Part shown: in pieces, positions 13,451 to 51,944 of the stretch
Layout: each line of letters starts with the position of its first letter
How positions within the stretch are numbered: position 1 is the first letter of the stretch
Sequence record: MK250021.1
Strand: one strand, 5' to 3'
Length of the DNA stretch: 64,000 bases
The notes under the pieces: generated by a model
Databases searched by the model: none
The model's input: only the letters and a program-made list of their open reading frames with translations
What the model was told of the DNA's origin: nothing
Made by a program: the position numbers and the translations under genes

Positions 13451-14464
13451 TTACATAATATATTGTAAAAGCATCTATGTTTCCTCATCAGCTTTTAATT
13501 TTGGATATGCAGCTCTAAGTATCTGTAATACACGTGTTTCTGTCATTCCATGTTCTTCTGCAACTTGCCATGTATTCTTTTCACCACGTCCATTAATACC
13601 ATAGCAATCACATACAATTTCACCATCTCTTTCACCAAGAACTCTCTTTACATTATCTTCAAGTTCTCTTTCAAGATCAGCGTTATTAAGATTACTATCA
13701 GGGTCTTTAAATGTCCTATTAGCTGTTACATCACCTAATGTTGTTTTAGAATCATCATCATCCCCGTATGATTTATCCAAACTATTTGCACGTGTATTTG
13801 CTTCCATTGTTTGTGCAAATGTTTCATATTTCAAATCTGGATGTTTCTTTACGAGAACATTATAAATATCATCAATATCAGGTTCATAACCATTCTTATT
13901 ATATAATTGATCCTTGATACGAGCGGCTTCACGAGCAATACTACCCATATTACGGGGAACTGCCATATGTCCACCTACCTCATCAACAGCAGTCATAATT
14001 TCTCTACGAATATACCAAATAGCATAAGAAACAAAACGTACATCTTTACCTGGCAAACTTGGATCATATGTATCTGCTGCTTGCATAAGTCCTATATTTC
14101 CATATTGAATCATATCTTCCTTTGGTATATTAATATTTTTATACTTATTGACAACAGAAATAACAAATGGAAGATTTGCGGACACCAACTTATTCTTTGC
14201 CTTTTCAATTTCTCTCTTATTATCAGAATGTTGAATAATATCAGCAAGTTTCACTTCATCTGCATGTGATAATTGTTTTTTCTTATTAATAGCATGTAAA
14301 TATGCAATAGTAGACTTTGCTGTATTTTCATCCTGTGTAATAGCAAAATCATCATGCAAATCCATATGCATTCCATTATTAGCTTCATTGAGTTTCTTTC
14401 TAATAGTCTTAGAAACATTTCTCATGATACTTTCATACAATGTCTTCTTTTCATTTAACTTCAT
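13451..14464 (-). CDS. Sigma-70 family RNA polymerase sigma factor, 337 aa in code 15
   Basis: Region 2 LVSANLPFVISVVNKY...DMIQYGNIGLMQAADTYDP...FVSYAIWYIRREI; region 4 HTH; track stop at 13475 is TAG, next TAA at 13451. Confidence 0.9.
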
Positions 14465-14558
14465 ATCTTGATAAAAATTATTTCAATATTTTAAATATTT
14501 ATCTTAAAATAAAAATAGAGAATAGTTATCGCAACTACTCTCTATTTATAATTATCTA

Positions 14559-15116
14559 TTATTCTATATTTAATATTTGTTTAATCTTTACTATGTCATC
14601 CTGTGTTATACCTGAATAACTATCTATTTTTATAAAGTTATCCTGTTGATATGTCATCATATCATCATCGTCATCTACTATACAATAATCTATTCTTAAT
14701 TCATCATCTTTAAATTTAAAATAATCTTCATCATAAAATTGTTTATAGTTTCGCACATTTGTATTTCCGCTATACATAAGGAAATAATGAATTTCATTTC
14801 CTCTTATTGAGTGTTCATCATGATATTTTGGTGTTATACCTACTATATATTTAATTAAACATTTCAAATCTTTATACTTATCAAACGCATATTTTGTTGC
14901 TTCTAATGAAATCTCTCTCCATGACGATGATATAACTAATCTTACATTATAATTCTCACATAATTGTTCTATAAGTTTTACTGCATTTTTGTCTACAAAA
15001 TGATCACCATTTTCTTCATTTATATATTTCTTTCCTTCCTTTGTAAAACACCAATTCGCATATTGTTCAGAATTCAAAACACCGTCTATGTCTAAAAATA
15101 ATATTTTTATATTCAT
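14559..15116 (-). CDS. HAD-family phosphatase (HAD_SAK_2-like, RNA-repair associated)
   Basis: ILFLDIDGVLNS, RLVISSSWR, CIVDDDDDM, FIKIDSYSGIT. Confidence 0.75.
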   Translation of the reverse strand: MNIKILFLDIDGVLNSEQYANWCFTKEGKKYINEENGDHFVDKNAVKLIEQLCENYNVRLVISSSWREISLEATKYAFDKYKDLKCLIKYIVGITPKYHDEHSIRGNEIHYFLMYSGNTNVRNYKQFYDEDYFKFKDDELRIDYCIVDDDDDMMTYQQDNFIKIDSYSGITQDDIVKIKQILNIE

Positions 15117-15119
15117 TTA

Positions 15120-16180
15120 TTAATCTTCATCAAAATTATCATATATTGAAATCTTATTCTTCCTACGTTCTTTCTTAGGTTCTATACAAGGAAAACAATA
15201 CTCTCCTACATGCTTTATATATCTTTCATTCGTATATGTTGGTTCACCTTTAAAATTAAAATTCCGTTGTTCACCATATGCAATATGTTTCTTTTTCTTC
15301 CATTTAACAACTTTATCTTTCTGTACTTCTATATCTTGTAAATCCTTATGTTTATTCTTTACTTTAAATTTTTTATCACATTCTACTACAAAACTAGATG
15401 AACCCTTATTTACTTTATGTGTTTGATGATAACTTCTTGACATAATATAAATTTTTTATTTATAATCTTTCTATATTTATAACTTTATCTGCTAATAATG
15501 GTTTTAATGTTTTATTAAACGTGTTTTCACTTATAGAAATTTTTTTATATCTTAATTTATATTCTCGTGTATTACTTTCAAAAGGATTATTTACTTCATA
15601 TTTTAATTCAGAAGCAAAATATATTGTATAATATATATTTGGTCTAACAGAATCATATGTTCTACTTATATTCTTTTCTATATATACAATGGATTTAATA
15701 GGTAAAATTATATTACTACATTTTATATATTCTATATTATTTCCTTTACTATGATTTTTAAATTTTATCATTTTACTAAATATATCTTAAATCATCTGCA
15801 TAATCGCACATATCTAAAAATTCATTTTGAAGTTCACTATCTATAATAGTAAATGCTCTGACTTCATCATATGATTTCTTGTCTGGAATAACATCACACC
15901 AATCTGCATCCACATCATATACTTTATGCGTCGCTGTAGACATAACACGAATCATTGTTTTTTCTTTATATTCTTGTGTATATCCTAACGGTCCATATTC
16001 GTTAACTAATACTGTTTTCTTAAATGGCTTCATAATACATACAAGTCTTGTATTCATTTCATCTTTCTCACATGAATACATTCCTGGTATAAGCAATACT
16101 CTTTTACCTGTTGTTACATTTATATTATATTCACAGTTACTTCTGAGAAATATCAAATCACCAATATTAAAGCACATCAT
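15120..16180 (-). CDS. Three early hypothetical proteins (16180-15776, 15771-15460, 15443-15120)
   Basis: Operon after promoter 16228. Confidence 0.6.
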
Positions 16181-16418
16181 AATTCTTTATATTTTTAATT
16201 GTTTATATTCTTATTTTATTAACAATACAAAGATACACATTATTTTTGATATAAAAAAGAAAACATAAAGAAATATCAATTTTTATAGTAAAAACAATTA
16301 AAATTCTATAGAAATCTTATTAAATTTTATAATATTTTTTAAACAAGTATAGATAAGAAAAGTCTACCATGACTTACATCATAATAGACTTATAGTACAT
16401 CTTTAAAAATAATATCTG

Positions 16419-16514: not shown

Positions 16515-16520
16515 ATATAG

Positions 16521-16967: not shown

Positions 16968-16974
16968 ATAAATA
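16968..16974 (+). promoter_or_regulatory. T4-late-like promoter ATAAATA, representative copy
   Basis: About 25-50 nt upstream of virion/late-type genes: 14496, 20938, 22906, 24559, 25574, 27871, 48252, 51974 (minus); 16968, 36891, 55195, 63493 (plus). Short AT-rich motif, so some chance hits are expected. Confidence 0.6.
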
Positions 16975-17009: not shown

Positions 17010-18224
17010 ATGAATAAGAATTATAACAAACTATATGAAGAAATGATGTCAGATATTTCAGTTATCGTTAAAAAGAAAATAAATGAAGCATATGACAATC
17101 AGCTTCTCGAAGAATATGGTGCAAAGGATATGTTTAATGATATTATGAAAGAAGCATCAAAAGAAGGTAAAATCTTTTATAAGCATCTTAAATAGTTTAT
17201 AATTTATATCATCAAAAAATTACAAGAGACAGATCAATATAAGAAAGCTGAAAAACTTATGAATGCGTATGTTCAGAAAGTACAGAAATATATTGATGAA
17301 CATAAGAAGATTACTCCGAGACGTATGTTGAAAATTACTGTTGCTGTATTGACAATGTATGGTGGCGTTTCAATGATACAAGATTGTAAATAGATGATTA
17401 AATCTTTATAGGGTAATGTTGAAACTTATGAATAGAAAGTAGAAAATGTACCGGATGAAAAGCAACAAGAAGTAATAGTAGAAGAACCTGAAGATTTTGT
17501 TGTTGAAGTTAAAGATGAAGCAAAAGAAGAATTAAGTGTCAAGAAAGTATCTACTGAAGATATTAATAATACACCTGAAAAGAAATTTAAAGAAGACAAA
17601 AATTTCAATTTTAAGTCAAGTAATGAGGCTCGCGAATTTATTAAACATCATGAGTTATGTTTACTTTACCCTTATTACGCAAAACCCGAAGAGGAAGCAA
17701 AAGGAATGGTAACTATTGGTTATGGTCATGTTGTATTGGAATCAGATGGTGAATTATACAAGAAAGTATAGCAATTAAAAAAGAAAGGCTTAATTAAACA
17801 ATCATTTGTTACAAAAAATGGTAAAACTATTTTAAACCCTAATCATTGTAAAACCATTATAACAAAGACTGACGCAGATAAATTATTTTAGAAAGATATT
17901 AAGATTGCTGAATAGCGTGCATATAGAACTATACAAAATATGCCTACTGATGATGATAATGTTAAATATTATATGTTATATAATCAAAAAATAAGAGATG
18001 GTTTAACATCATTATGTTATAATGCTGGATAGCTTAAACATGAAAAATATACATTCATAACAAAAGGTCTTGCAAAATCTAGATATGATTATCAAGCATA
18101 GAAAATAAATGCAGGTGATTATAATGTATCCTTTAAATATTTCAAGAATATTAAAGATAATCCTAACAGAAGAAATGAGGAATATAAGTTATTCTTTATG
18201 AACGCAAATAAGTCTATGTCATAA
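17010..18224 (+). CDS. GH24 phage lysozyme with N-terminal extension, 404 aa in code 15
   Basis: Nine in-frame TAG; FIKHHELCLLYPY...GMVTIGYGH...GLTSLCYNAG...RRNEEYKLF. Confidence 0.8.
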
Positions 18225-18249: not shown

Positions 18250-19602
18250 ATGAAAAAATTATTTGAAGCAAAATAGAAGCCATTAGTTGTTTATAATCCT
18301 GCTGATATTTTCATGAAATATAATATGAAACCTGGTGATTATGTTTCAATTGCATATGTATCAGATACATTATAGGGAGAAGGTGCTAACCCACTTGTAT
18401 CAAAACGTGGTTCAAAAAAGCAATGTTATAATATAAATTCAGAAACGGACGCATAGTTATAGCAATATATTAATGCTATGCCTAATAATAGAATTAAATA
18501 GTTATTAACAGAATTTAGGGAATCTACTAAATATCAAAGCTTTTTAAATGGCACTGCAAAGACAAAAACATGTATGCTTGATTTAACAACAGAACATATA
18601 CTTAAGATTAGTCATTTAACATGTAACTGGAAAGATTCTAAAGCATTAGCAAAATTTTATAAAAAATAGAATGATGCTGAATTAAATCTCCGTAGAGAAT
18701 TTGGTTTTGAAGACGGTTATGATAATAATTATGAACGTTTTTATAATCGTAAAGATGATAAACCGGTACCATTGGATGATAGAACACCAGAAGAAAAAGA
18801 AAACGATAAAAATTGGAGAGATTCTTATAATGGTAGAAATGTAATGCCTCGTATCAAGAAAAATGGTAATGAATATAATATTGCAACTATTATTCCAGGA
18901 ATTTATGCAAATTTAAATAAACCTGGTAATATTGCATTACGTTTTGCATATAACAGTCGTTCAAGTCATACAGATTCCGATTATTATTATGTAAATGGAG
19001 ATGGTACATTATTTAAGCTTGATATGGCATTTATTACATTCTTAACATATGCATATAAAAAGAATGCTATGTCTTCTGATAATACCGAAGAAAAGTCATA
19101 TGTGTCAGATGAAGAAAAAGAATTTGTTTTAAGATTAAAGCAACTAGTAAAAGATGCACCTAGTACTGCTGAAATGACACTTAAAACAGATAGCATATTA
19201 TTTATGAAATCTACTGCACGTACGTCAAAAAATGCAAAGGTATCAGAAAATGTACCATTTGTTTGGATTAATACTAATGCTGTTGTAAATAAGTATGATT
19301 TTGTAAATCCTTCTGATTTAAATAATGTTATTAAAAATCTTGTTTATTCTATAGATGATACTAATGTTAATGCGACAATTGAAAATATAAATGTTAAAGG
19401 CAAATCTATTTCAGATTTAGTTTCAACAACTGATGGTAAAGTAACTGCAGATCCGACAGAAGTAAGAAAGAGATTAGGTATTGCAGAAGCATTAAGATGT
19501 ATTGCATATAAATATACAATAGAGAAGAAAAAGAAAGCACTTTATGAATCAATAATGAGTAAAGTTGCAAAAACTATTAAAAGAAAGTTACAATTAATTT
19601 AA
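18250..19602 (+). CDS. Hypothetical late protein, 450 aa in code 15, C-terminal LYESIM motif
   Basis: ATG 18250 is in frame with track ORF 18772 through TAG codons. Confidence 0.7.
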
Positions 19603-19650: not shown

Positions 19651-20907
19651 TTAAAATCTTATAAATGAAACTACTTTTGCTTTTACATTTGGATCTGCAA
19701 TCTTAAATACCTTGTCAGGATTTACCTATAACATAATATTCGATTCACCTTTATCTGTAACAGAAGAAGTCCAATATCTTCCTGAACCAATAATATCTTC
19801 AACTTTATTTAATTCTGGTAAAGTTGGCAAATATGCATGTTCTGTAATTTCTTGTTTTACCTCATTAATTTGTGCATCATTCAAACCGGTTAAATTCAAT
19901 TTCTTCATAGGTAATGATTTGGCAGCAGAAGCGGCATTGTTACCGTTATCAGAAAGAATGTTTGTATAAAATTCTCCTTTAACTTCTTCTTGATAATAAT
20001 AATTTGATCCTGCTGTAATCTATAATTTCTAACTAGCACCAACTAATTTCTTCTTGAAGTAATAATCATCATATACACCATTATTTCCTGCATTACCTAA
20101 TGTTACTGTTTCATCACTCATAACCATAAATACAGGTTTCTTATCTAATGTCTTATATGTAGTTAATACGCACTTAGCTATTGCATTCTATGCATCATTA
20201 CTTAATACCAAACCATCATTTTCATCCCATACTAAGAAATCACCGATATTTGCTTTCCTTAATGAATTACCAACTGTTTTAAAGTATGGTTTCATACTAT
20301 CATACTTTTCACCTATTGTTATAGGTTCTTCATCAATATCATCTTCCATAGATACATCATCATAATCTGGATAATCATTAGATGTTTCTTCTGAATCGAT
20401 ATTATCATCTTCTGAATTATCAACAACAGGTTCTTCATGTTGTTTAATAGAATCATCAAAACCTCTACTTACTTTAACTGGTTCATCAACAACTTCTGGT
20501 TCATCATCTACTGTATCATCCGTTGAAACATCATCATAATCCGGATAATCTTGCTTTACAGGTTCTTGTGAAATTTCACCATCAAATTTACCACCATTTT
20601 CAACATATAATTTCTATATTGATGTTATATCACCACCTGCATTTATATATGCGTCACCAATATTTTTATATGCTTTCAACTTATCAATATCAGAAATATT
20701 ATGTGGACATTCAACTTTCATAGTAAGCAAACCTGCAACATATTTCTGAAGAAGGATTTCCTTTGAGTCTTTCTTCATAACTCGGGCATCTTCACCTAAT
20801 GTTGAACGCATACGACTTGACATAGAACTCATAGAAGCCCAAATCTTCGGATCTATTGTTCTCTATACACGTGCTTCGTTTAATATATTATTTTTAAATG
20901 TTCTCAT
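19651..20907 (-). CDS. Acidic-repeat protein with C-terminal YLPTLPEL...YWTSS (DUF1566/Lcl-like) motif, 418 aa in code 15
   Basis: Joins track ORFs 20614-20832 and 19726-19908 through TAG; starts MRTFKNNILNEA. Confidence 0.65.
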
Positions 20908-21082
20908 TTAATATTAAAATAATTATTTTACTTATGATATTTATCTTTTATAATAAAATAAGAGATTTAGAATTAAATAATTCAATTATAGCATATTCAT
21001 ACAAAAATAGGAGTAAACATAATTATCTTATATTTACTCCTATGTATTTATTTATTATTCTAAATCAAAAATTGCCTTAAAA

Positions 21083-25660: not shown

Positions 25661-27847
25661 TTATTCATTTCTATTTATATTATATTTATCTAAAAGATAA
25701 TTTGCAAAATCTTCTTTTTCCTATGTTTTATTATTAAATCTAAAAAAGAAATTAAGATTAAGACCTACTTTTCCACCTTGCAAATAATTAGTTGGCCAAA
25801 GTCTTACCATCTTATTCATTACATATTCCTCTATTGTCTTGAATCTATAATGATTTAACCTTGCATTTTCCCATGTACTATTATTTATTAAAATAGAATT
25901 CTATGTTAATTTACCGGCTGTAGTTACACAAACAACATCATGATTTCTTATCATACCATGTGGAGAATCAAAAGTTCCATTTTTTATACATGTCTTAACT
26001 ATAACTTTTGTATTAACTGAATGTCGATTTGTAATAGGTAAATAATCAGTAAATCTCTTTATTGAATAATTATTATCTTCGACCTTTAATATTTCTGAAT
26101 CTGTATATTGTCTCCAACAAACTCTTATTGTATTAATACCTCTGTCATTATACATATCTTGAGATAAAAATTCATGTATATCATTGCAATTTAATTCTAA
26201 AAATTCATCAATATCAAAATATGCGATCCAATCATATTCATCTTTATATGTATTATAACAATCTGTATATGATGGAATCTATGCTTCAAATTTTCCTCTC
26301 CAATCTTTTAATATTACATATCCAGAATCTATATAATCAGCAATAACATCTTCAAAATGTTCCCCGTCAATATCATTATTATCATATAAAACTATATTGT
26401 CAAATCCTATTGATTTATGATGTTCAACAAATTCTCTTATATAATTATTTTCCATTTTTCCTATACAGCATAATAAAACTTTTCCTGTATACCGTTTTAT
26501 CTCATTCTACATATTTAGATATTTTAATTTTATTGGACATACATCAACTAATTTCTATAAATCAATATTAAATGTTGAATTGTAATTTTCTTTCAATAAT
26601 AATAAATTATCTGTAGTTGTATCATCATTTATTAAATAAGGTTCATAATATGGTTTATTAATAGATAAAAAGAAATCTTCATATTTTAAATCTTGATCTA
26701 TACTCTCACCAATTGATACCCATATATTAGGAATTCTGAAAGTTTCTGAAATAATTAATCCGTGTAGACTTTCTGAAACTATAAAATCACATTCTCTAAT
26801 TTGCTTAATAATATCTTTCCATGATTTATATTTTTTAAAATTTATTATCTATACATTTTCATCATCTTTAAATTTAAATAATAATTCTGATTTTATATGT
26901 GAATGATGCGGTATAATTCCTAATTTATATTTTCTTAAAACATAAGGATTATAATAATATGGAATTAATAATGCAGGATCACCATAAATTTCAGGACATT
27001 CAATTCCAGATTCTATACATATTTCTCTTGTTTTTGGTCCACGAACTGCATGAACTTTATATGGCTTATTTTCTAATAATTTATATCTTAACATTCCTGA
27101 TCCCCACACTTCTGTGTATTCATTTATATACTTATCTATAAATATTGATCCAATCATTAAATAATTTGTTGTTAACTAATTATCATATTTTTTATGTTTC
27201 TTTCGTGTTATATTAGGTAAAAAAGAAAAATTTATATCATCACCAAAATTATTAACTCTTAAATTACCGTTTTTATATAAAAATACCCACCCATTTAAAT
27301 ATATTATATCATCATTATTTATGTCTTCAGTATAATCTACATCATTTAGGTTTGATACTAATGATACAGAAGAATTAGATTTTAAAATGTAACTAATTAT
27401 ATTATCTTTTACTTTACTTTCTTCCTTTGTTTTATCTTTAAACTATTTACTATTAATAATAACATTTTTATTTTTAATAATATCCTATTTCTCTTTAAGA
27501 ATTTCCTAAATTGGTTTTACTTTAGACTCAATAGTAGGTATCATGATATTGGAAACATAAGCATACGTTTCCTTATTTGTTTTTATATTGTTAATATTAA
27601 TTTTTGTATTATTTCCTTTATGTTCTTTTTCTTTATTATCATAATTAACAAATGTTTTCATATTAGGTTTCGTAACATTACCTAATATGTACTTATCAGG
27701 ATTATATGTACCTTGTAACTAATTTATATTATTAGTCACTGATGAGAATCCGTCCTAATTATAATAAACACCAGCATTCTAGGCGTAACTTCTATTTTTT
27801 GAAAAATATGCTTTATCTATCTTCTATACATTTTTAATTGGAAACAT
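25661..27847 (-). CDS. Polysaccharide pyruvyltransferase + GT2/GT92-like glycosyltransferase fusion, 728 aa in code 15
   Basis: NFGDDIN, AVRGPKT, YGDPALL, SLHGLII (pyruvyltransferase), then ENNYIREFVEHHKSIGFDNIVLYDNN...WIAYFDIDEFL...LNHYRFKT (GT); frame continuous through TAGs. Confidence 0.75.
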
Positions 27848-36921: not shown

Positions 36922-37833
36922 ATGAAATTTAATTTTGATAAATCTATTAATGAAAAATTATCTTTTTTATATGAATCATTATTTGATGATGAAACTGATG
37001 ATATTCTTAATAATGATGAAGAATCTCCGTTGAGTAATGTTTATAATGATGAAAAATAGTTTAATGATTTTTTAAATGATTGTAATAAATTAGATTTATT
37101 TTATAGATAGTGGAATTCTGAAAAATATATAGAAAGATTATAGGAAGAAAAGAAAATTAATCATAGTAATGTGATTTATCTTAAACAATTAAGTTTAGCT
37201 TTTAAAGATTAGAAATAGTTTGATAAATTTTGTAATATGTTCGATTGTTATCCAACATTAAAATTATATATAGGATATTTAGAATTAGATATGAATTTTG
37301 ATAGAAATGGAATACCTAATATAAAATTTAATTTTAATAATTTTAATAATACATTTATTGATATTGATACTATTTCTATATATGGCGGAATATTTGAAAA
37401 TTTAGAAGGAATTAATGAAACAATATCATTGAAAAATATTCATTTTAATAATTCTTATGTTAAGTCAATAAATGGATTATTAGGAAGCGTTAGAATATTG
37501 GATTTTTTATATAATAAACCTATTGAATCCGTTACTGATTGGAGTAATTTATAGAATATGACAAAACTTTATAGGTTAACCGTTGATTATACAGAGTGGA
37601 AATTTATTGGTATAGATCATCTTTTACATTTTAATAATATACCAGAAAACATATTAGATATAAAGGAAGTTAATTTTATAAATCATGATGCATTTGGTAA
37701 ATTAAGATATTATAAGAATTATATAAAAAATATGTTTATAGAGGAAAATCCTAATGTTAAAGGTAAACTTAAATCTAATATTATTAGACAACTTCAAGGT
37801 AATTATGAACCTATATTACATGGGAGAAAATAA
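36922..37833 (+). CDS. LxESLFDD-family late protein with LRR-like repeats, 303 aa in code 15
   Basis: Joins 37237-37554 and 37558-37833; starts MKFNFDKSINEKLSFLYESLFDD. Confidence 0.65.
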
Positions 37834-39686: not shown

Positions 39687-40604
39687 ATGAATAAGAATAT
39701 TAGACGATTAATAGAATCTCTATTTGATGATGATATATTAGATGATATTAGTAAACCAGATAATTCTGATATGATTTTTGATAAAATAAGTTCAACTGAT
39801 ATTGTAAAGCCTTTATTGGATAAGATAGTAGATAGATCCGAGAATAATGATTTAGCAATATTTTTCAACGCATATAAAACATTACCATAGTTATCCGAAA
39901 TATCAAAAAGTTATAAGAATGGAATAAACATAGGTTATGTTAGAATTTCATTATATAAAGGAAATGTAAAATATTTTAAAGAATTATTTGATATATTATT
40001 GGATTATGATATTCATTTTAGTATAAACGTATTAGAATTTTCATTAGAAAATAAAACTGATAAGGTATATTCAATTAAAGATTTATTTGATTTTGAAAAA
40101 TATAAAAGTATTTTAAAAATAAAAGATTTTGTAGTTAGTTATGGGAGATTAAAAGATTTTAAAGGATTTCCGTCTTATATAGAAAACGAAATTTATTTAA
40201 ATTGGATTAAAGAAGTAAATTCATTAGAAGGATTTCCAATAACAAAAAATAACTTATCTTTATATTTTAATAATAGTGTATTACCGGATGATTGGACCGG
40301 ATGCCCACATAAATTACAAGAATTAAATTTTCAACCGGAATTACCATCTATGTTATTTAATGTAGAGGATGAAGTTAATTCTATTGTTAATAGTATGGGT
40401 AATTTAAAAAATATACCATATGATTTAACATTTGAAAGAGATAATATGAGTAGAGGATGTAATCTATATATAGGATGCATGCTTGTAGATCCTTCATGGA
40501 AGACAGAGGTTAAAAAAGAAATAAGAAAATATATAGGAAATTGCTTAAAAACACAATATAAAAATATAACTAATTTAAAAAAAAAAATTATGTTATAGTA
40601 TTAA
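39687..40604 (+). CDS. LxESLFDD-family late protein with SLEGxP repeats, 305 aa in code 15
   Basis: Joins 39687-39890 and 39999-40598; LKDFKGFP, VNSLEGFP, WTGCP. Confidence 0.65.
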
Positions 40605-40721
40605 AATGACTTAATTTATTTATAAAAATCACAAAATTATATTAATTTATAGTTTTGTGATTTTTTATTTTATAATAATATGTGTATCTTTGAATTATAA
40701 ATTAAAAAAATGTAATTTATT

Positions 40722-43700
40722 ATGGATAAGAATACATTAAAAAAACAGATGAACCAAATTCATGATATAAATTTATCAAAGCGAATTGGTGAAGTTTGTG
40801 AGTGTCCAGTATGTGGCAATTCTTTCGTTAAGAAACATATTAAACATGTTTATTGTGGAGGACGTGATAATCAGACATGTAAGAATGCTTATAATAATTT
40901 CATGCGTTATAATACTGTTTATGATTTTGGGAGATTTGTTAATTTGAAAAATAAAAATAAAAATAATAATGTCACTACTAAATCAACAAAATCATTTAAT
41001 AAGTATATGTCTTTTTCATTTGGCAATGATTCTTCATTATCAGATAAGTCGAATAAAGAGTTAAATGAAGTTAAAGATACTTCTAAGTATGTTAGTGAAA
41101 CTTTAAGTGTAGATAAACAAGTATTAAAGAATATTGAGTCTTCATTAGAAACTCGTATTAGAGAAAAAATTGAAAAAGAGTTTGAATATGAATATAAGAA
41201 TAAATTAGAGAAAGAATATAATAAAGGTTATAATAAAGTATGTGCTAACTATGAAGAAGCAAAAAATGGGAAAATGCCGAATTTAATGGTTGTGTTTAAA
41301 TAATGATGTATGTTGTTATTTTATAGATTTGATGATATTCCAAAAAATGAGAGGTCTTCAATTTTTTGGAGAGGCGAAGAAAAAATAGGTGAAGAAAAAG
41401 GAGTATCTGTTTATGAAGCTCATAAAAATATAAATGGAACATATTCACCAGTTTTACCTAATCCTATAAATGAAACAGGGTTTGATACTTTTATTCATTT
41501 AATTAGATATTATTCCGGTAACAAATATTTGGTAACAGGAGATTTATTAGATGACAGAGGAACAGATGGTGAACCATTAATTAAGAACGTTAAAATAATT
41601 AAGAAGTTATGAATAAAGAAGAACGTTATAAGAAGATAAATGATTTGATTCCACAAATCGAGTTAATTAAAGATACTATTTATAATATCGTATGGGAACC
41701 TCAGGAAGGTGATTTTGATAATCATTTCGACAATCTTCCAAAAGCAGAGAAGGTTGCTATCATAGGAATATTGAATGATGCAAATAGACTTAGTAATTCA
41801 GTTGCATGTTATGCACATTGGTTTGAACAAAAGTAAACATTTTCAATAATTTAGACTATAATTTATAGATTTGTTGTTAATTAGATAAAGTTTATGAAAA
41901 ATAATAAAGAAATTATTAAGGAATTTTATCCATATGTAAGTGATGCACTTAAGAAAATGGATAATGTTGATATAGAAACATTGCAGAATACATATAATAT
42001 TCTTAGTAATATGAATGATTATTCTGTTGATGAAGTTATTAATGCTCAAAAAATAGTTAAAGATATTATTAATAAAACTATTGATGAGTTTAAAGATAAA
42101 TTTATTAAGAATGTTTCATTTGATGATATTATTTTATATGCGCAGGTATCAAAATCTGTATTGAAAAATAATAATACAAAGAAGAATTTTTTTAATAATA
42201 CGGGTGTAACTATTGATACAAAAAATATAGTAGGAACTAAATCATTTGAAGCTATTCAACATGATTTGTTTGGTGGTGAACCAACTGTATATAAGAAGAA
42301 AAAGAAGTTTTCAAAAATTAATGATAAAGTTACACTTTATTCAAATATTCCTTATTTAACTCTTAAGAAAAATGAGCATTTATATCGTATAGCTACACTT
42401 ATTCCTTATAATAAGCAAGTAGTAGATGATAATGGTAAGAAAATAAAGGGATTAATCTATGGAATGCTTCCAACTATGTATTTTGTAACAGATAATAAGA
42501 AACGAGATTTTAGAATTGCTCGTAATAATTATATTAATATTGTAAGGTCTCAGAATGAAAAGTTGGTTAAGCATTATGAAGAAACTTACAATATTACGTT
42601 AGGTTATGATGTTTCAGCTAAAATGATTAAGTAATTATGGTAGCAACTTATATAGCATTTACATTTTTTGTATGTTTAGTATTATTATGTTTTACTATAA
42701 TACTTTTTATATGTATATCAGTATATGATAATATGGTACAATATAATGATCCAGGTCCATTTAAGAAATGGTTTTCAAGAATTATAATTTTTATTATATG
42801 CTATTTTTTTATAAATTGGACACATTATTTAATGTTTAAACCTATACGATTTATAAGTAGTGATGAACCTGTTTTAATAACAGGAAATAATGCTACATAT
42901 AGATATTATAATTATTTTCAAACAGATTCTGATGATGTAATTGTACATAAACCGATCTATATGAAAGGTATAATATATAAGGATAAAGTATCTAATTGTA
43001 GTGATAATGATAATAATGTTAATCATCATGATATTTGTATAAAGTCAGAAGATGGCAAACATATTGAAGAAGATTATCATTATAATCCTCAAATAGAAGA
43101 TTTACCTTTTGAAGAATATAAAAAACGTGTAGGATTTAAAAAGGTATTTTTTCCAGAGGAACGATATTATTTAATTTATTTTAGCAAATAAAAGTTTATG
43201 ATGAATATATTTTTAATTTTACATTTTATACCCGTAATTGTAGGACTATATATTTTTTATATAATACCTTATTTTACATTGAAAAAGAATTCATCATTAT
43301 ATGATTATTTTAATAATTTGGAGTTTATATCAATTCCATCTTTAACTATATTAACAATAGTACCAATATTTAATTATATTATATTGTTTAAATTAGTTGA
43401 AGAGTATAGTAATGATTCTGAAAAAGAAGAATGTTTAAATCAAACAGTATCTAATATATATGATTTCTTTAAAGAATTTTTTACAGCTTTATGGATGTTA
43501 TTTGTATGGTTGTTTGGTCTTAAGTATGTATTTAGATTTTTTAATAAAATATTAACACTTAAAATAAAGTAATTAAAAATGGAATTAACAAAGGAATATC
43601 TTTTAGATCATGGATATGAAACAAATCATCCTGATCGTGTTTTGTGTCGTTTTTATAAGACTAATAATGAATCTCCTGAGTGGCGAGTTAGTGTAGAACA

Positions 43701-43851
43701 GGAATATTTTCCATTGAGTAATAAACTTACATTCAATATTAATTGTTGGAAGTGTAATGAGAGTGGTGCTATTATTAAGCGTTCTTCTATAGGATATGCT
43801 ACAACAGTTGAAGAGTTGAATAATGTTATTGCTCTATGTGGAATCGAGTAA
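40722..43851 (+). CDS. Early operon of hypothetical proteins (40722 Zn-finger; 41310; 41609; 41894; 42637 and 43198 membrane; 43579)
   Basis: Follows TATCTTTG at 40685; no in-frame TAG in these ORFs. Confidence 0.65.
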
Positions 43852-44672
43852 TATTTAATATAAAGAATTTATGGTTTTGGTATTTAATAAATTATTATAC
43901 CAGAACCTATTTCAATAATTTAAAGAATATGATGGTTAAACCGTATATTAAAGAAGATAGAAAATTAACAGCTAAGAATCATATAGAAGAAATGGAAAAT
44001 TCTTTTCATCCTATGATTCAAACTTCTATTAGAGATTCTGTTGTATATACAGAGGATGATAATGTTTTAGATAAAAGAAATATTATTGTAGAAGATATAA
44101 AGACAGAAGATGCAGTTTTTAAGTATGGAGAAGATAAACATTTATGTGTATTGAATTTTTCAAGCTATAAATATCCTGGTGGAGGTTTCATTAAAGGTGC
44201 GATAGCTCAAGAAGAAGCATTATGTCATGCAAGTGATTTATATAATGTAATCTCCGATAAAAAATTTAATACATATTATGAACATAATCGACAAAATACT
44301 AACGGCGGATTATATAAGAATTTTGCTATCTATTCTCCAAATATTATTTTTAATAGAGTTGCTGATAATTTTATTTCTGTAGATGTAATTACATGTCCAG
44401 CACCAAATCTTTCACATTATGAAGGACATATTTATTATGCGATGAAAGCTATGAATGATAGAATAAAATTTATTCTTGATATTGCAGAGAAACATAAACA
44501 AAAGAATTTGGTTCTTGGTGCATTTGGATGCGGAGTATTTAAGAATGATCCTCAATTTGTTGCTGAAGTATTTAAGGAATTATTGGGATCTTCTAAATAT
44601 CATTTTGAAGCCATTATATTCGCAATACCGGGAGGAATTAATTATAAGAAATTTAAAGAAGTTTTTTCTTAA
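43836..44672 (+). CDS. TIGR02452/DUF2263 macrodomain, bacterial-type PARG-like (start may be near 43930)
   Basis: VLNFSSYKYPGGGFIKGAIAQEEALCHAS, VITCPAPN, LVLGAFGCGVFKNDP. Confidence 0.85.
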   Translation: MWNRVIFNIKNLWFWYLINYYTRTYFNNLKNMMVKPYIKEDRKLTAKNHIEEMENSFHPMIQTSIRDSVVYTEDDNVLDKRNIIVEDIKTEDAVFKYGEDKHLCVLNFSSYKYPGGGFIKGAIAQEEALCHASDLYNVISDKKFNTYYEHNRQNTNGGLYKNFAIYSPNIIFNRVADNFISVDVITCPAPNLSHYEGHIYYAMKAMNDRIKFILDIAEKHKQKNLVLGAFGCGVFKNDPQFVAEVFKELLGSSKYHFEAIIFAIPGGINYKKFKEVFS

Positions 44673-44747
44673 ATATTTTTTTATTTAAAATAAAATATGT
44701 ATCTTTGTATTGTTAATAAAATAATGAACAATTAAAATAACGAAGAT

Positions 44748-45647
44748 ATGAATAAGTCTCTTAAAATACAAATAACACTTCTTGTGGTTATTCTTACAGT
44801 AGGAATAATTATAGTTAACAACATTAAATCTAATGTTAACTATATTAATGAACCTTGTCCTCTTTGTGGTTCATCTGAGGTTCTTGATTTTGGTTATGAT
44901 AATATGAATGGTCAAGAACATGCTCATTGTGTTACTTGTGAAAGAGACTTCTACATTGATGTAGATTAAAAAGTTCCTACTGTTTTTTATAATGGTTAAA
45001 GAGTATTAGAGAATATTCTTTAACCATTTTCTTTTATATATATAAACAATTATTTAATTATTTAATATAAAATATAGAGATGATAAATTTTAAAAAGAAA
45101 CATGTTGAACGGACATATTTTTCTGTTATAATGTCATGGGTATATACAGGATATAAATATGATTCTGTTTCTGATGCAACAAATAATTTAAGAAAAGCAA
45201 TAGAATATATAGAAAACAATAAATCTGATTTATATTTTGATGAAATTATATCATCTGGATTAGGCTCAATAGCATCAGGAAATTATACAGATACTATTAT
45301 TAGACCATATCTTATAGTAAGGAGAAATTATTGGGATGATATGTTTAAAACAGAACATGAAAAAAATATATATAAACAAATAATAAATTTAACAATACCT
45401 TAAAAATATGATTTATGAAATGAATGTTAAAGAAGAACCAGATATTTTTAATGAATTAAAAAAATATCTTCAAAATACATATAAACTTTCTGTTGTTGAA
45501 TCTATTAATTTAATAGGTAAAATAGAAAATTTAATTAGAAAAGAAACCGATAAAATTATAAAAAATAGAAAACCATTTGAAATTGATTTTAATAAAATTG
45601 ATTTAGATGATATTTTAGATGTTGATTTTTTAGATGATAAAAAATAA
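44748..45647 (+). CDS. Three small hypothetical proteins (44748 membrane-anchored Zn-ribbon; 45080; 45408)
   Basis: First follows promoter 44700; CPLCG...CVTC. Confidence 0.6.
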
Positions 45648-45857: not shown

Positions 45858-46991
45858 ATGTTAAAGTCTATTAAAATACGAATATATCCTGATAATGTTT
45901 AGAAAGAATTTATTTCTAAACAGTTAGGTTGTTGTAGACTTATATATAATAAATTATTGGATTATAAGAAGTCATAGTATGAGTAGAATAAACAATCTGT
46001 TTCTTTATCACAGTTAGGTAAATATTTAACTAATTTAAAGAAACTAAATGAATATTCTTTTTTAAATGATGTTTATTCTTAGTGTTTATAGCAATCTATA
46101 ATGGATATGATTAAAGCATATGATAATTTCTTTAAATTACATAATGGTTATCCTAAATTTAAATCAAAGAAAGATACTAAACAAACATGTAGATTTACAA
46201 ATACTATATTTAAATTTAAGAAAAAGAAAATTAATGGTAATAGGATAACATTAATTAAATAGTTATAGAATATATTATTTAAATGTTCAAAAAGAGATGA
46301 AATATATTTAAATCATAATCAGGATAAAATCCATTTTATTACTCTTACTAAAACATCTACTGAAAAATATTATCTATCTATTTGTATTGAGTATAATATT
46401 TATAAAAAAGAAAAGTTAGATACAGTAATAGGTCTTGATTTAGGTATTAAAGACTTTATAGTAGATTCTAATGGAAATAGATATGAGAATAAACATTTTT
46501 ATAAAAACCAAGAAAAGAAATTAAAGAAATTATAGAGGAAACTTTCTAAAAAGTAGAAAGGAAGTAATAATAGAAATAAAGTTAGAATTAAATTAGCTAA
46601 CGTTCATGAAAAAATAGCTAATCAAAGAAGCACATATTTACATCAAATTAGTTCAAAATTAGTTAACGAGAACCAAGTTATCTGTATTGAAGATTTAAAT
46701 GTAAATGGTATGATGTCTAATCATAAATTAGCTAAATCTATATAGGACTTAAGTTTCTATGAATTTAGACGTTAGTTAGAATATAAATGTAGATAGAATG
46801 GAAGACAATTAATGATTATAGATAGATTTTATCCTTCTTCTAAAACATGTCACAATTGTGGATATATTTATAAAAGTTTAAAATTAAATGAACGCGACTG
46901 GATATGTCCACATTGTAGATCTCTAATAGATAGAGATTATAATGCTTCATTAAATATTTTAACTGAAGGATTAAGACAAATTAATTTATAA
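45858..46991 (+). mobile_element. tnpB: TnpB RNA-guided endonuclease paralog, 377 aa in code 15; no tnpA
   Basis: Same length as and highly similar to 32432-33565; RuvC D/E/D residues intact. Confidence 0.9.
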
Positions 46992-47150: not shown

Positions 47151-47621
47151 ATGAGTTTGTACAAATATCCAAGTATACATGGTTTGAAGGATATTGCAAT
47201 GATTTATAATGATTCTGAATGGGATAATGCAAAACTTAAAGTGTGGGATCCTGAATATCAAAGAGAATATAATATATCATTTACAGGTTCTACAAGACCA
47301 ACTGAAACTGAACCAGGTATAGTAAGTTTCAATATATCAAAAGTAAAAGACGAAAAATCTGCTGATGAAAAATCAATAGATATTTATTTAGATAAAAGAT
47401 TTCCTAATATATCTAAATTAGAGAGAAACAAATATGAATTGATTTTTAGAGCAGGTGTTGAATATGGAAAGAATGTAAGTAAAAAAGATTTACTTAAAGA
47501 ATTATTTAAATCACCATGTGAAAAATGTGGTAGTTATATGATGTCAGATAATTGTATTTGTAATAAATTATATAACTATTGTGATTTTATAGAAGAAATA
47601 AAGAAAAGGATAGAGAAATAA
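47151..47621 (+). CDS. Hypothetical protein with C-terminal Cys cluster
   Basis: ATG abuts the omegaRNA right flank; CEKC...CIC. Confidence 0.6.
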   Translation: MSLYKYPSIHGLKDIAMIYNDSEWDNAKLKVWDPEYQREYNISFTGSTRPTETEPGIVSFNISKVKDEKSADEKSIDIYLDKRFPNISKLERNKYELIFRAGVEYGKNVSKKDLLKELFKSPCEKCGSYMMSDNCICNKLYNYCDFIEEIKKRIEK

Positions 47622-47646
47622 GAATCTCTATCCTTTATTATTTTAT

Positions 47647-48219
47647 TTAATATTCATCATCGTCATCCCATTCATCGTCAGAATCATCATAATCTTCCTC
47701 TTCATCATCAAAATTAGAATCAGAAAGATAAATTTCTTCTATAACTACTTGATTAACTTTGAATACCATAAGTCCTTCTGAAAATTCAAGTTCAATATCA
47801 ATTTCACCATCTTCATTTGCAGGGAATATTTGAATACTTTCATCTTGTTTTAATTCAATTTCAGGTTTACAATAGGCAATATCAAAAATACCTATTGTAC
47901 CAGAATCTACATCATATTTTTGATTTGTCATAGAATCATATGTACCATCGCCATATTGAGTTCCTTGAATAATACCTATAACTTCCTCATCATTTTCAAG
48001 AATTCCATCAGGATATTTCTTTGCACCCCATACATTATCATAAATATCTTCTGTTAAACAATAACATGGATCACCAATAACAAGTGATTCTACATTTGTT
48101 AATGTTACATAATAACGTCCACTTGTTTGTGTATATTTCTCATTAATTGATTTCTTTACAGATTTTGATACTGATTTCATTATACTTTCATATAATGATT
48201 TCTTTTGTTTATTATTCAT
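47647..48219 (-). CDS. DUF4241-like protein with N-terminal LYESIM tag
   Basis: LVIGDPCY, GTQYGDGTY, YDVDSGTIGI. Confidence 0.55.
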   Translation of the reverse strand: MNNKQKKSLYESIMKSVSKSVKKSINEKYTQTSGRYYVTLTNVESLVIGDPCYCLTEDIYDNVWGAKKYPDGILENDEEVIGIIQGTQYGDGTYDSMTNQKYDVDSGTIGIFDIAYCKPEIELKQDESIQIFPANEDGEIDIELEFSEGLMVFKVNQVVIEEIYLSDSNFDDEEEDYDDSDDEWDDDDEY

Positions 48220-48334
48220 AATGTTATGTAAATTAAAAAAATTATTTTTAGTATTTATCTTTTAACAAAGATACATAAAATTTTTTAAATAAAAAAGAGA
48301 TGTAATTTAATTATTACATCTCTTAAATTATTAA

Positions 48335-48637
48335 TTATCCATCATATCCGTATTTACCGAATACATGAACAATTTCACCGCTTTTAGTTGTATAAGATTT
48401 ATCATAAGATTCTAGATCATAATCACCGAAGTAATCATCATATGATTTATATCTCCAGCTATCTTCTGTAATATCTTCCTCTGATATAGAATCTTTTGAA
48501 ACTAATTTATTATGATCTCTATCAAGAACATATGTTCCATTTTTCCATCCATTATATTCATCATCTGATGCAAATGTCAATGAATGTGTAGAACTTGAGT
48601 TAGTTTCAAATACACTTTTTCTTACTTGAATTCTCAT
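48335..48637 (-). CDS. FETNSSSTH-motif protein 4
   Basis: MRIQVRKSVFETNSSSTHSL. Confidence 0.8.
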   Translation of the reverse strand: MRIQVRKSVFETNSSSTHSLTFASDDEYNGWKNGTYVLDRDHNKLVSKDSISEEDITEDSWRYKSYDDYFGDYDLESYDKSYTTKSGEIVHVFGKYGYDG

Positions 48638-48655
48638 TATATATTAATATATATT

Positions 48656-49219
48656 TTAATTACTCTTATAGTATTCCCATGATTTTCCAAAATTTGGACA
48701 ATCCAACTCTTCATCACTATTATCATTACCTGTTGATACATAACTATTATAATCAAACAAATAATTCATAAGTTTCTTTTCATCACTTATAATATCTGTA
48801 AGAAAATCACCTACTTCATTTCCATGATCTATATAACCACTATCTTCTTCATCATCATTATTCATAAATTTAATATAAGTATATTCACTACCATCATCAT
48901 ATTTATGAACTTTAACTTTCATATTAGCAGCATATGGAAATAGTGCTTTAATATTATGTTTTGCAAGAATATCTGTAATTGATTTAATTGCATTATTTAC
49001 TTTATCAATATTATTCCAATAACAACTTGTAATTGCTTCCCATAGATATTCTGCTTTAGTAGCAGTGTCAAAATGAATATCAAAATCCCATCCAAATTCG
49101 CCTTTACCAAATATTACTTTATCAGGAAATTCATTAATATCAGATTTCTTAATAATGGAAATAGAATGTGTTGAACTTGAATTTGTTTCAAATACACTAC
49201 GTCTAACTTGTACTTTCAT
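48656..49219 (-). CDS. FETNSSSTH-motif protein 3
   Basis: MKVQVRRSVFETNSSSTHSI. Confidence 0.8.
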   Translation of the reverse strand: MKVQVRRSVFETNSSSTHSISIIKKSDINEFPDKVIFGKGEFGWDFDIHFDTATKAEYLWEAITSCYWNNIDKVNNAIKSITDILAKHNIKALFPYAANMKVKVHKYDDGSEYTYIKFMNNDDEEDSGYIDHGNEVGDFLTDIISDEKKLMNYLFDYNSYVSTGNDNSDEELDCPNFGKSWEYYKSN

Positions 49220-49243
49220 TTTATTTTATAAAATTAATAATTA

Positions 49244-49909
49244 TTAAATAATATAAATCTTTGGTTTATAATAAGGTGCATAAGCTTCATCGGCATAAGT
49301 AATAGTATTATTATCATCCATAATATTCCAAAAATATTCATTGAATTTTTCTACTGTTAACCAACCACCATTTTCACCAATATTTTCAAAAAACTTTTTA
49401 TTTGTATCTGTATTTTTTGTAAATTCAACATATGAACCATATTCAAGTTGATTCTTAACATCTTGAATATCATACCCATGTTGTTTTGCAATCTTCTTTA
49501 TATACTCTACAAACTTCTTATATACTTCTGTATCTTCTAACCAATCATCATGATTATCCTCAAAATAATGGTTTCTATATTCAGCTCTATTATAATCTTC
49601 AATATAATATGCATTGTTATTTAATTCCATTGCAATATATTGAAGTTTAGCAACCCAATTATTAATGATATAATAAATATTAGTCATTTCATCACCATTT
49701 TCGAAATCAATACCACGAAGAATAAATGTATGTTCTATAATATAATCCTTTGGATTAAATATACCACAGTCCATATTATCCTTATATTGCTCAAAAATAG
49801 CTTTATATACAATATCTTTTACATCATCAATTGTTCCATGTGTAATTTGTAAAGAATGTGTTGAACTTGAGTTTGTTTCAAATACACCTCGTCTAATTTG
49901 TACTTTCAT
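49244..49909 (-). CDS. FETNSSSTH-motif protein 2
   Basis: MKVQIRRGVFETNSSSTHSL. Confidence 0.8.
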   Translation of the reverse strand: MKVQIRRGVFETNSSSTHSLQITHGTIDDVKDIVYKAIFEQYKDNMDCGIFNPKDYIIEHTFILRGIDFENGDEMTNIYYIINNWVAKLQYIAMELNNNAYYIEDYNRAEYRNHYFEDNHDDWLEDTEVYKKFVEYIKKIAKQHGYDIQDVKNQLEYGSYVEFTKNTDTNKKFFENIGENGGWLTVEKFNEYFWNIMDDNNTITYADEAYAPYYKPKIYII

Positions 49910-50409
49910 TAATCTGGTTCTATATAAATTTTTGTATGTTCATGATTTAAATCTTTATCGTAATTGAAATAATCCCTATCAAATATGTCAACTTTTGATT
50001 CATCATTAAAAATATATTCTAACAATAATTGCTCAAAGTCTTCATCTTTTTCATCAAATAGGTCATTAAATACATCTTCATACCCATAGCTATAATTATC
50101 ATATTCTCCCGTTTCTGAAATAAGGAATACACAATTAATATCATATTTAGATAATACTTTTTCAATGCGATATTTAGTAGACATAAAATGAGATAGATTA
50201 TCACCAAATGTCATATAGTCAAATAAGTTATCTAATCTATCTTGAAAATGATTACCTTTATCTCTTTCTCGCCAAGGTAAACCAAATTTAAGTGTAGTTC
50301 CTGCATATAATTTAAGAATTTTATCATCTACAGGTTTTGTACATATAGTTAATGTATGTGTTGAACTTGAATTAGTTTCAAATACACTATGCCTTATTTG
50401 AATTTTCAT
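49909..50409 (-). CDS. FETNSSSTH-motif protein 1
   Basis: MKIQIRHSVFETNSSSTHTL. Confidence 0.8.
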   Translation of the reverse strand: MKIQIRHSVFETNSSSTHTLTICTKPVDDKILKLYAGTTLKFGLPWRERDKGNHFQDRLDNLFDYMTFGDNLSHFMSTKYRIEKVLSKYDINCVFLISETGEYDNYSYGYEDVFNDLFDEKDEDFEQLLLEYIFNDESKVDIFDRDYFNYDKDLNHEHTKIYIEPD

Positions 50410-50432
50410 AATTTTCCTATTGTTTTATATTA

Positions 50433-51317
50433 TTACTTATTATATTTGTTTCTAATAAATTGAAACATTTCATCCATAGTCTTATCACCTATAGGGAATC
50501 TTTCTTTAGAAATTGAATTCTTTGCAAATTCACCCTTTACTAAATCAATATAAAATGTATAACCACCATCATCTCCCATGTAGAATTCATTCCATTCATC
50601 ATCGGACATAATACGTTTTACATCAAGTTGCTTAATTGCTAGATTATCAAAACTTAATACTTTAAACTTCTCCGTAATTTCCTTAAGATTATCAAAGATA
50701 TATTTACGATTTGTTTCAATCATATCATTATGTTCCTTATGGAAATTAACTCCTCGTTGTAAATCTTTATATCCAAGGAGAAGAACTTTAAGATTATGAT
50801 TTGCCAACTTATTAATGTCATCTTCAGATAAAATTCCTACAATAGTATGAAGAACTGTATTAGGAATACTATTCATTTTCTGGATAAGTTCATCAGATGG
50901 TTTTACCAACGAAACACCAATACCATATACGAGTTTATTATCAGACCAATCCTTTAATTTATCATAATTATCAAAGAATTGTTTTTGATTTACTGTAATA
51001 TTAGCAAATACTTTCTTCGATTTAAGGAAATTAAGGAACTTATCAAGATCAGGGTGATCAAGGTCATTACCATTCAATGCAATTTCTGTATATGGATGAA
51101 GTGTATTTATAAATGGATATGCAAACAAGTCACCGTGTTTCCCATGTGGTGAACATCCCTCGTAGCACCACAAACATCCGATTTTACACTTATCTGTTAA
51201 TTTACAGTCTACATTTTCACTATATGCTGGAATAAACTCATCATCATTTGTACGACGAATTTTTGTTCCATCACCCAAAATTGTTACGATATAATTACCA
51301 TTCTTATAACTTGGCAT
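50433..51317 (-). CDS. Radical SAM enzyme
   Basis: CxxxCxxC (CKIGCLWC), EIALNGND, ANITVN, GIGVS; no SPASM CxxC cluster visible. Confidence 0.85.
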   Translation of the reverse strand: MPSYKNGNYIVTILGDGTKIRRTNDDEFIPAYSENVDCKLTDKCKIGCLWCYEGCSPHGKHGDLFAYPFINTLHPYTEIALNGNDLDHPDLDKFLNFLKSKKVFANITVNQKQFFDNYDKLKDWSDNKLVYGIGVSLVKPSDELIQKMNSIPNTVLHTIVGILSEDDINKLANHNLKVLLLGYKDLQRGVNFHKEHNDMIETNRKYIFDNLKEITEKFKVLSFDNLAIKQLDVKRIMSDDEWNEFYMGDDGGYTFYIDLVKGEFAKNSISKERFPIGDKTMDEMFQFIRNKYNK

Positions 51318-51446
51318 AATTTCTTTATTTTAAAAAATTAATAAATTTAAATTTAATATCACGAAGATACATAATTTGTTTATATATAAAAAAGAAAATA
51401 GAGAATATCTAACATTAATTAGTAAATATTCTCTATTTTAAAAAAT

Positions 51447-51944
51447 TTATAATTCTATTATTTCTAATTTATTATAAGGTATTATTCCATTATAAAAATA
51501 TGTTGGATCTATTTCATCTTCAGATTCTTCATCATATATGTTGTTTTGATCTAAAGAAAGTTTATTTAAATCAATATCAGATGTTTTAATTTTAAATACA
51601 ATAATTTCTAATTCTTTTTCATATCGATCTTCATATTCTTCAGCAAACTCTTCAAAATCATCGGAACATTCCAAATATGATTCCGCAACATATTCATCTG
51701 TTGCTAAAAAAACACCATGACTTATATTTTCATATGGCGTATTTTCATAATTCCAAAATCGTTTCTTTGGTATTTTTGCACCTAACCCATTTTTCTTTAT
51801 TGAACGCAAATAACAAGATGGAGTTGCATGATAAAAATATTCAGGTATATTATAATTGATTGTTTCATTAATTGATTTCTTTACAGATTTAGAAATAGAT
51901 TTTATTATATTTTCATATAATGTTTTCTTTTGTATAGAATTCAT
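51447..51944 (-). CDS. ADP-ribosyltransferase-fold protein (Tpt1/KptA- or DUF952-like) with N-terminal LYE tag
   Basis: YHATP...SIKKNGL, GVFLAT...AESY, IVFKI. Confidence 0.6.
   Translation of the reverse strand: MNSIQKKTLYENIIKSISKSVKKSINETINYNIPEYFYHATPSCYLRSIKKNGLGAKIPKKRFWNYENTPYENISHGVFLATDEYVAESYLECSDDFEEFAEEYEDRYEKELEIIVFKIKTSDIDLNKLSLDQNNIYDEESEDEIDPTYFYNGIIPYNKLEIIEL

Follow-up and report, generated by a model that had tools for sequence, protein, structure and literature searches.

We describe here a short peptide, hereafter the leader, that is carried by otherwise unrelated proteins encoded in a 64,000-nucleotide stretch of sequence record MK250021.1 (the window). The window is 100% identical to the Prevotella phage Lak-B2/B4, window position x corresponding to record position x+186000; Lak-B2 and Lak-B4 are uncultivated megaphages of ~550 kb each. 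Its G+C content is ~25%, and many of its long frames are open only if TAG is a sense codon. The recoding of Lak phages to code 15 has already been described, and was published as concentrated where the structural proteins are encoded. As the genome itself shows TAG to be a sense codon, TAG was read as glutamine in all the gene models used here.

A leader shared by unrelated window proteins

Four window proteins bear the leader at their N-terminus: a sigma-70 factor, a lysozyme, an acidic protein and a protein with a predicted ADP-ribosyltransferase (ART) fold. The gene of the sigma-70 family factor (13451-14464, minus strand) encodes the leader in its codons 1-27 (14384-14464), contains a single TAG, at codon 330, which is read through, and has a late-promoter-like ATAAATA box 38 nucleotides upstream of its start (14496-14502, minus strand). 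The lysozyme gene (17010-18224, plus strand; leader 17010-17087) contains 9 TAG codons, and its box, also on the plus strand, lies 42 nucleotides upstream of the start (16968-16974). The other two genes are on the minus strand and have no TAG codon; one encodes the acidic protein, of 190 residues (47647-48219; leader 48139-48219; box 48252-48258), and the other the ART-fold protein, of 165 residues (51447-51944; leader 51864-51944; box 51974-51980). All four genes thus stand behind an ATAAATA box, as an earlier sequence-only reading of the window had pointed out, and the distance is 36-42 nucleotides. A fifth peptide of the same type is C-terminal (~19519-19599) in a 450-residue protein of unassigned family (18250-19602, plus strand; 6 TAG codons), for which no Pfam or PHROG match was obtained. 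The five peptides quoted in the sequence-only reading are all in place when TAG is read as glutamine. For the C-terminal one, which is conserved in Lak-A1/C1, the (I/L)NE end that had been ascribed to it is missing, as the peptide ends in KRKLQLI, without NE.

The leader is 27 residues long, with the consensus M-x4-KK-x-LYESIM-x2-VSK-x-VK-x2-(L/I)NE. When the five window peptides are aligned, L-Y-E is common to all, with a constant 16-residue spacing to N-E. A 30-column profile built from these five peptides was used in a six-frame scan of the whole Lak-B2, Lak-A1 and Lak-C1 genomes. The window copies scored E 1e-12 to 1e-17 in the 550-kb genome, which is far beyond chance, and strong matches (E 1e-8 to 1e-19) numbered 10-12 in each genome of the Lak clades A, B and C, with a clear gap between members and noise (43.7 vs 26.3 bits). 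Nearly all the Lak copies start at the initiator methionine and finish with (L/I)NE, and the sequences beyond are unrelated. Two L/I-x-E sites, LYE-S and (L/I)NE followed by a small residue, are the best-conserved parts of the leader. It is predicted to form one helix (residues 3-28 in the model of 51447-51944) and has a net charge of ~+4. The orthologues of the sigma factor, of the lysozyme and of 47647-48219 in Lak-A1/C1 are tagged as well.

Two weaker ends of the xxNE type had also been listed in the sequence-only reading, and only one of them belongs here. The 418-residue protein encoded at 19651-20907 (minus strand; ATAAATA box 20938-20944) begins with MRTFKNNILNE (20875-20907). Since its paralogues, Lak-B2 7792-9252 and 39800-41425, both bear a full, diverged leader, it looks like a member whose leader has been truncated. 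The other, at 36922-37833 (plus strand; box 36891-36897), is not a member, as its N-terminus (…LYESLFDDE…) is of a different family. This second motif, L-(I/M)-E-S-L-F-D-D-(D/E) with an acidic run after it, was found at 36922-37833, 39687-40604 and Lak-B2 278260-279774 and 501526-503001, in TAG-using proteins of 300-500 residues, and may represent another class of leader. The box of 36922-37833 comes after an assembly gap or masked stretch, a run of N at 36381-36865 in the divergent intergenic region between the minus- and plus-strand gene blocks, and a TAA at 36892-36894, likewise past the gap, closes the frame of this gene. Since none of the tag-bearing frames spans the gap, its continuity is irrelevant to the leader. 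We also noticed that, at Lak-B2 record position 42649-42738 (minus strand), a leader is followed by just 7 residues (34-residue frame), where related IMG/VR Lak fragments have a 143-residue frame; this is probably a truncated tagged gene.

Leader and cargo across Lak phages and metagenomes

The sequences that follow the leader, which we call the cargos, had been described as unrelated folds, and this was borne out. In the sigma factor, Sigma70_r2 is matched with 44.6 bits, above its cut-off, with regions 3 and 4 just below theirs, and residues 12-326 match phrog_351 (E 2e-42). Its Lak-A1/C1 orthologues have a diverged leader ending in LNE and 4-5 TAG codons; the TAG at codon 330 of the Lak-B2 gene corresponds to an arginine in these orthologues, and the C-terminus beyond it is conserved. 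In the lysozyme, the leader is followed by a hydrophobic segment and an acidic linker, and the Phage_lysozyme domain (Pfam) is C-terminal. The acidic protein 47647-48219 matches phrog_20074, of unknown function, with a weak DUF4241-like lead.

For 51447-51944, an AlphaFold2 model made without an alignment was useless (predicted local distance difference test score, pLDDT, of 36), and the model was remade with 40 homologues (pLDDT 86.6). It comprises the helical leader, a short linker and a globular domain. This domain aligned best with Tpt1/KptA (VIA-align Z 9.2, 89 aligned residues, root-mean-square deviation 2.5) and then with DarT (Z 7.7), followed by pertussis S1, Arr and RES. The top Foldseek rows were all ART-fold proteins, none reaching E 1e-3, and the Atlas leads were DarT, RES, DUF3990 and Arr. 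The model thereby identifies 51447-51944 as an ART-fold protein. Across the 40 homologues, H-A-T is invariant and a number of acidic and aromatic residues are conserved.

This cargo is also the one that best reveals how mobile the leader is. No match to it was found in Lak-A1/C1, and 71 relatives were found in other Lak-like contigs, in which the leader is swapped for other short leaders; in one 660-kb phage the homologue has the leader at its C-terminus instead. Since the cargo is kept while the leader is swapped or moved, the two appear, from these sequences, to recombine freely. The distant homologues carry leaders of the types …IIKETINEYL… and …LTESD..IVKES..LKE…, whose pattern is similar to that of the Lak leader, and this suggests a wider leader family in gut phages.

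A scan for further copies in the genome and its relatives had been proposed at the outset, and it revealed a set larger than first noted. Besides the copies in Lak genomes, 932 protein clusters matched the leader profile at E<=1e-3 among 1.84 billion representative proteins; the pattern and boundary figures that follow were obtained on the best 150 of these 932 clusters. The strict leader pattern is present in 147/150, nearly always beginning at residue 1, with LY at residues 9-10 in 119/150. Its last three residues are LNE in 103 cases and INE in 38 (together 141/147), and I/L-D-E in 5, and the residue after the glutamate is S, A, D, N or G in 109/147. The information per column is 1.4-4.7 bits from the methionine to the glutamate, 0.8 bits just after the glutamate and less than 0.35 bits two residues on. 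The leader columns fixed by the filter are conserved partly by construction, which does not apply to the unconstrained columns or to the boundary. Among 113 tagged proteins with a cargo of at least 40 residues, we counted 87 cargo families with no BLASTP link between them, and for most cargos the Pfam and PHROGs searches gave nothing. Where the contig context could be read, it was that of huge phages with TAG as glutamine and T4-like replication genes, one contig reaching 717 kb; tagged proteins of the 'MTYNEKKS…' type were found only on contigs shorter than 2 kb. A tblastn search of GenBank phages with a 40-residue leader query returned only the Lak-B orthologues, in a search of low sensitivity that is not evidence of absence.

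Several metagenomic proteins (P0008, P0020, P0030, P0044, P0109, P0128 and P0147) contain two leaders, or an internal leader with a methionine ~8 residues upstream. They represent either genuine fusions or pairs of genes annotated as one; P0109 has neither a stop nor a TAG between its two halves.

It is the peptide that is selected. Across the eight strong leaders of Lak-B2, residues that are identical are encoded by the same codon 195 times, when 194.2 are expected from the codon usage of the genome; serine and leucine alternate between their codon families, and the mean nucleotide identity is 67%. Synonymous codons being free, selection acts on the leader peptide. Together with this selection, the module itself, its sharp boundary, its portability, a protease family with its catalytic residues and a shared promoter box, the latter two described below, were all computed directly.

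Prohead protease, capsid protein and putative late promoters

T4 gp21 cleaves after L/I-X-E, and the N-terminal propeptides that it removes have 7-65 residues; that of gp23 has 65. The suggestion that the end of the leader resembles such a site agrees with our data, as the motif is L/I-x-E with small residues next and the phage encodes a protease of this type. The Lak prohead protease matches PF03420 (Peptidase_S77) with 56-58 bits, for a cut-off of 27, in Lak-B2, A1 and C1, and is 31% identical to T4 gp21 (E 2e-10). It also matches PDB 5jbl and keeps the catalytic histidine and serine, both of which are alanines in the 5jbl sequence. On these matches, Lak encodes a prohead protease of the T4 gp21 type. 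Its own N-terminus reads …LTLNE-S and its tail is long and acidic; it is plausible that this tail is a partner for the basic leader.

The adjoining gene encodes a coiled-coil scaffold candidate (Lak-B2 503479-504732), with a diverged leader ending in LSE-A. Lak further encodes a gp23-like capsid protein, for which phmmer gave no match in the PDB; its N-terminal region contains AYES, IYES (residues 29-32) and LNE (62-64), and T4 gp23 has LTE at residues 63-65.

The ATAAATA box is found 26-48 nucleotides upstream of 114/599 genes of a crude Lak-B2 gene set, against ~1.4% by chance. It forms a sharp positional peak (25-44 nucleotides upstream), with an A-rich spot 4-5 nucleotides after the box, and is strongly associated with TAG-using genes (odds ratio 7.4, p 1e-19). 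The box precedes 8/8 of the strong N-tagged Lak-B2 genes (p 1.4e-6) and 14/14 of those in Lak-A1/C1, 22/22 in total. It also precedes the protease gene, and that of the capsid gene is further off, 61 nucleotides upstream. Since the same box is in front of the tagged genes and of the protease gene, they share one promoter class.

The T4 late promoter is TATAAATA, read by gp55. The Lak boxes resemble it by their ATAAATA core and by their fixed distance from the 114 genes, that of the protease included, and Lak-B2 has a gp55-like late sigma factor (record 405724-406110, plus strand, outside the window; 3 TAG codons), which matches phrog_234 (E 4e-11) and is 30% identical to T4 gp55 (E 0.007). An ATAAATA box stands in front of this gene too. 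The Lak boxes differ from the T4 promoter in the base before the core, where A accounts for 60% and T for 22%, and in belonging to a phage whose host is a Bacteroidota bacterium.

TAG is used by only a subset of the window genes, with a maximum of 14 codons per gene, in 25661-27847 and 55230-57503, and multi-kb blocks devoid of it are found at 40722-45647 and 47151-52694; this is the known Lak code-15 mosaic. The first of these TAG-rich genes (25661-27847, minus strand) has a late box and encodes a 728-residue fusion of a polysaccharide pyruvyl transferase with a GT92/GT2 glycosyltransferase. Two IS605 OrfB/TnpB-like transposase genes, at 32432-33571 (minus strand) and 45858-46991 (plus strand), match phrog_506 (E 1e-118 and 1e-123) and have 9 and 12 in-frame TAG, respectively, and are mobile elements written in the phage's own code. 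A homing-endonuclease-like gene (38007-39116, plus strand; phrog_3339) contains 11 TAG codons. Finally, four tandem paralogues with no Pfam match, which have the common start M-(K/R)-(V/I)-Q-(V/I)-R-x-x-VFETNSSSTHS, are encoded at 48335-50409 (minus strand), between the tagged genes 47647-48219 and 51447-51944 and on the same strand.

Proposed capsid targeting and its alternatives

The best explanation, which we consider reasonably likely, is that the leader acts as a T4-like propeptide for targeting to the capsid (prohead core), and that the Lak lineage has a longer version of its own. By analogy with T4, the tagged proteins would then be packed into the head and injected. Late in infection, the gp55-like sigma factor would read the ATAAATA promoters, and the head genes and the tagged genes would be co-expressed. 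The 27-residue basic N-terminal helix would dock each protein to the assembling prohead core, its docking partner probably being an acidic complex of scaffold and protease. The gp21-type protease would cut after the glutamate of (L/I)NE, and probably after LYE as well, which would free the cargo inside the head and leave the leader as small peptides. The cargos (the sigma-70 factor, the lysozyme, the ART-fold enzyme and many small acidic proteins) would remain with the DNA and pass into the next host cell. We infer all of these steps: docking, cleavage, packaging and ejection. A late promoter in front of a sigma-70 gene is most easily understood if the factor is brought into the next cell.

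The resemblance to T4 is extensive. In T4, as in Lak, a short N-terminal leader ending in L/I-x-E is found on unrelated proteins (IPI, IPII, IPIII and the Alt propeptide), and the first 10 residues of IPIII, its capsid targeting sequence (CTS), are enough to load foreign proteins into the head. Lak has a gp21-family protease, a gp23-family capsid protein and a T4-like late promoter box. One Lak cargo has, from its model, the ADP-ribosyltransferase fold, as Alt, the T4 ADP-ribosyltransferase that is packaged, cut by gp21 and ejected. The two systems differ in scale, with 10-12 tagged genes in each Lak genome and cargo families that run into the hundreds over the whole lineage, and in the leader itself, which in Lak has 27 residues and two L-x-E sites and in IPIII 10 residues. 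They also differ in the C-terminal copies and in cargos which in Lak are mostly acidic and include a sigma-70 factor and a lysozyme; moreover, the Lak system is known from sequence alone.

Several observations weigh against this reading. The T4 targeting sequence has 10 residues and the Lak leader 27; in view of these lengths, the Lak leader would be a variant and not a member of the T4 sequence family. The T4 internal proteins are basic, whereas 78% of the cargos of the 113 tagged proteins are acidic. The C-terminal copies (18250-19602, without NE, and the metagenomic homologue P0227) do not suit a simple N-terminal propeptide that is removed, although that of 18250-19602 may dock without release or be trimmed at LYE. 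The leader had been described as an amphipathic tag of ~27 residues; its length and its single predicted helix hold, and its amphipathicity finds only slight backing, the hydrophobic moment of 0.31 being unexceptional and matched by 19% of shuffles. In the capsid protein, the N-terminus is only 23% identical to that of T4 gp23 in a MAFFT alignment, which is too weak to place the cleavage site. As [LI]NE is over-represented in the Lak proteome as a whole (observed/expected 1.59), its occurrence close to the start of both the capsid protein and the protease is only suggestive and could be due to chance.

The timing of expression raises a further difficulty. The tagged proteins had been called late, which their promoter box supports and the use of TAG in the small ones does not. 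In six small tagged Lak-B2 genes, including 47647-48219 and 51447-51944, TAG stands for 0/24 glutamine codons, as opposed to 34% of the glutamine codons in the other small late-box genes (P ~4.5e-5). These small genes avoiding TAG, their promoter box is the only mark of lateness they bear. Our searches for RNA runs covering the window stretch and for a Lak virion proteome found none.

An alternative that we judge unlikely, while taking it seriously, is that the leader serves as a helix for docking or localisation to another common partner, such as a membrane, a chaperone, the host RNA polymerase or a phage compartment, (L/I)NE being part of the surface that binds and no site of cleavage. A basic helix with a net charge of ~+4 would suit such a role, and so would the C-terminal copies, where cutting after the leader would not remove it; moreover, small tagged genes that avoid TAG could precede the code switch. 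However, near-invariance over 27 residues on hundreds of cargos points to one specific protein partner and not to lipid, and the hydrophobic moment does not stand out. Conservation stops exactly at a glutamate with small residues behind it, in a phage that encodes a protease of a Glu-specific family. The leader is also associated with the promoter box of the protease gene.

We likewise doubt, and place after the docking helix, the explanation that the leader addresses only assembly parts to the prohead core, which would be degraded or expelled at maturation and would not be delivered effectors. The coiled coil next to the protease, which is scaffold-like, and the capsid propeptide bear related sequences. 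Many cargos are small, acidic and familyless, rather like the T4 core proteins, which are fragmented and for the most part leave the head. Nevertheless, a sigma-70 factor, a lysozyme and an ART fold have no plausible role as scaffold. The cargos also have a slight deficit in internal [LI]NE (10 vs 11.7 expected, or 0.85, compared to 1.59 for the proteome), a weak trend on small numbers that would fit their survival and not their degradation.

Two other explanations are highly improbable, and we reject both. Conservation at the DNA or RNA level, through an element for translation initiation, a downstream box or a homology arm by which gene cassettes are swapped, would account for a motif at the extreme 5' end of coding regions and behind a common promoter box, but it is contradicted by the free synonymous codons, by the serine and leucine switches between codon families and 67% nucleotide identity reported above, and by the peptide's presence at C-termini. 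As for the tagged proteins being diverged paralogues of one family with the leader as its best-conserved region, real paralogues do exist (19651-20907 with its two Lak-B2 relatives), yet the cargos span sigma-70, lysozyme and ART folds in 87 unlinked families among 113, and conservation of the ART cargo extends to 71 relatives in which its leader is swapped or at the other end.

The proposed capsid-targeting propeptide can also be compared with systems outside T4. In phiKZ, 201phi2-1 and SPN3US, a gp21-related protease (gp175/gp245) cuts many internal head proteins after a glutamate, the propeptides are thought to target the prohead, and identical N-termini are possible among paralogues. In contrast to the Lak leader, those propeptides mostly exceed 100 residues and have no single portable consensus, and the motif is S/A-x-E where that of Lak is L/I-x-E. 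C-terminal processing is known in T4, where gp21 and Alt both undergo it. The cargo-loading peptides of encapsulins are short conserved terminal peptides which, at either end, send unrelated enzymes inside an HK97-fold shell. They involve no protease step, DNA or ejection, and the peptides are unrelated to the leader, so that the analogy is functional only.

The sequence-only reading is in the end partly supported: what could be computed came out as it predicted, and its core claim, that the proteins would be packed into the head and injected, is one of analogy with T4. In the literature that could be searched, we came across neither the leader motif nor the Lak prohead protease. The putative capsid-targeting leader of Lak would be new, longer than that of T4 and far more widely deployed.

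More tentatively, Lak might load a large and fast-changing set of proteins into its head by means of one address label, for injection with the DNA. The injected set would possibly include, and here too we are cautious, a sigma-70 factor reprogramming the host RNA polymerase, a lysozyme cutting the wall, an ART-like enzyme and hundreds of small acidic proteins. T4 packages Alt, and N4 and the phiKZ-like phages package RNA polymerases; what phiKZ, 201phi2-1 and SPN3US package is a multi-subunit polymerase and not a sigma factor. We know of no other phage with a packaged sigma-70-type factor.

Lak phages are among the largest known and are common in human and animal guts, have never been grown, and their takeover of Prevotella is almost unknown. 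The leader is a possible tool, as the T4 CTS is, and it defines a target for metaproteomics, namely peptides starting right after (L/I)NE. If the proposed role is true, the leader would mark which of the ~600 mostly unannotated genes of a Lak phage encode proteins that travel with its DNA, and more than 900 metagenomic protein clusters would become candidate injected effectors. In this way, metagenomes alone would yield a catalogue of the proteins that an uncultivated lineage injects for host takeover and anti-defence.

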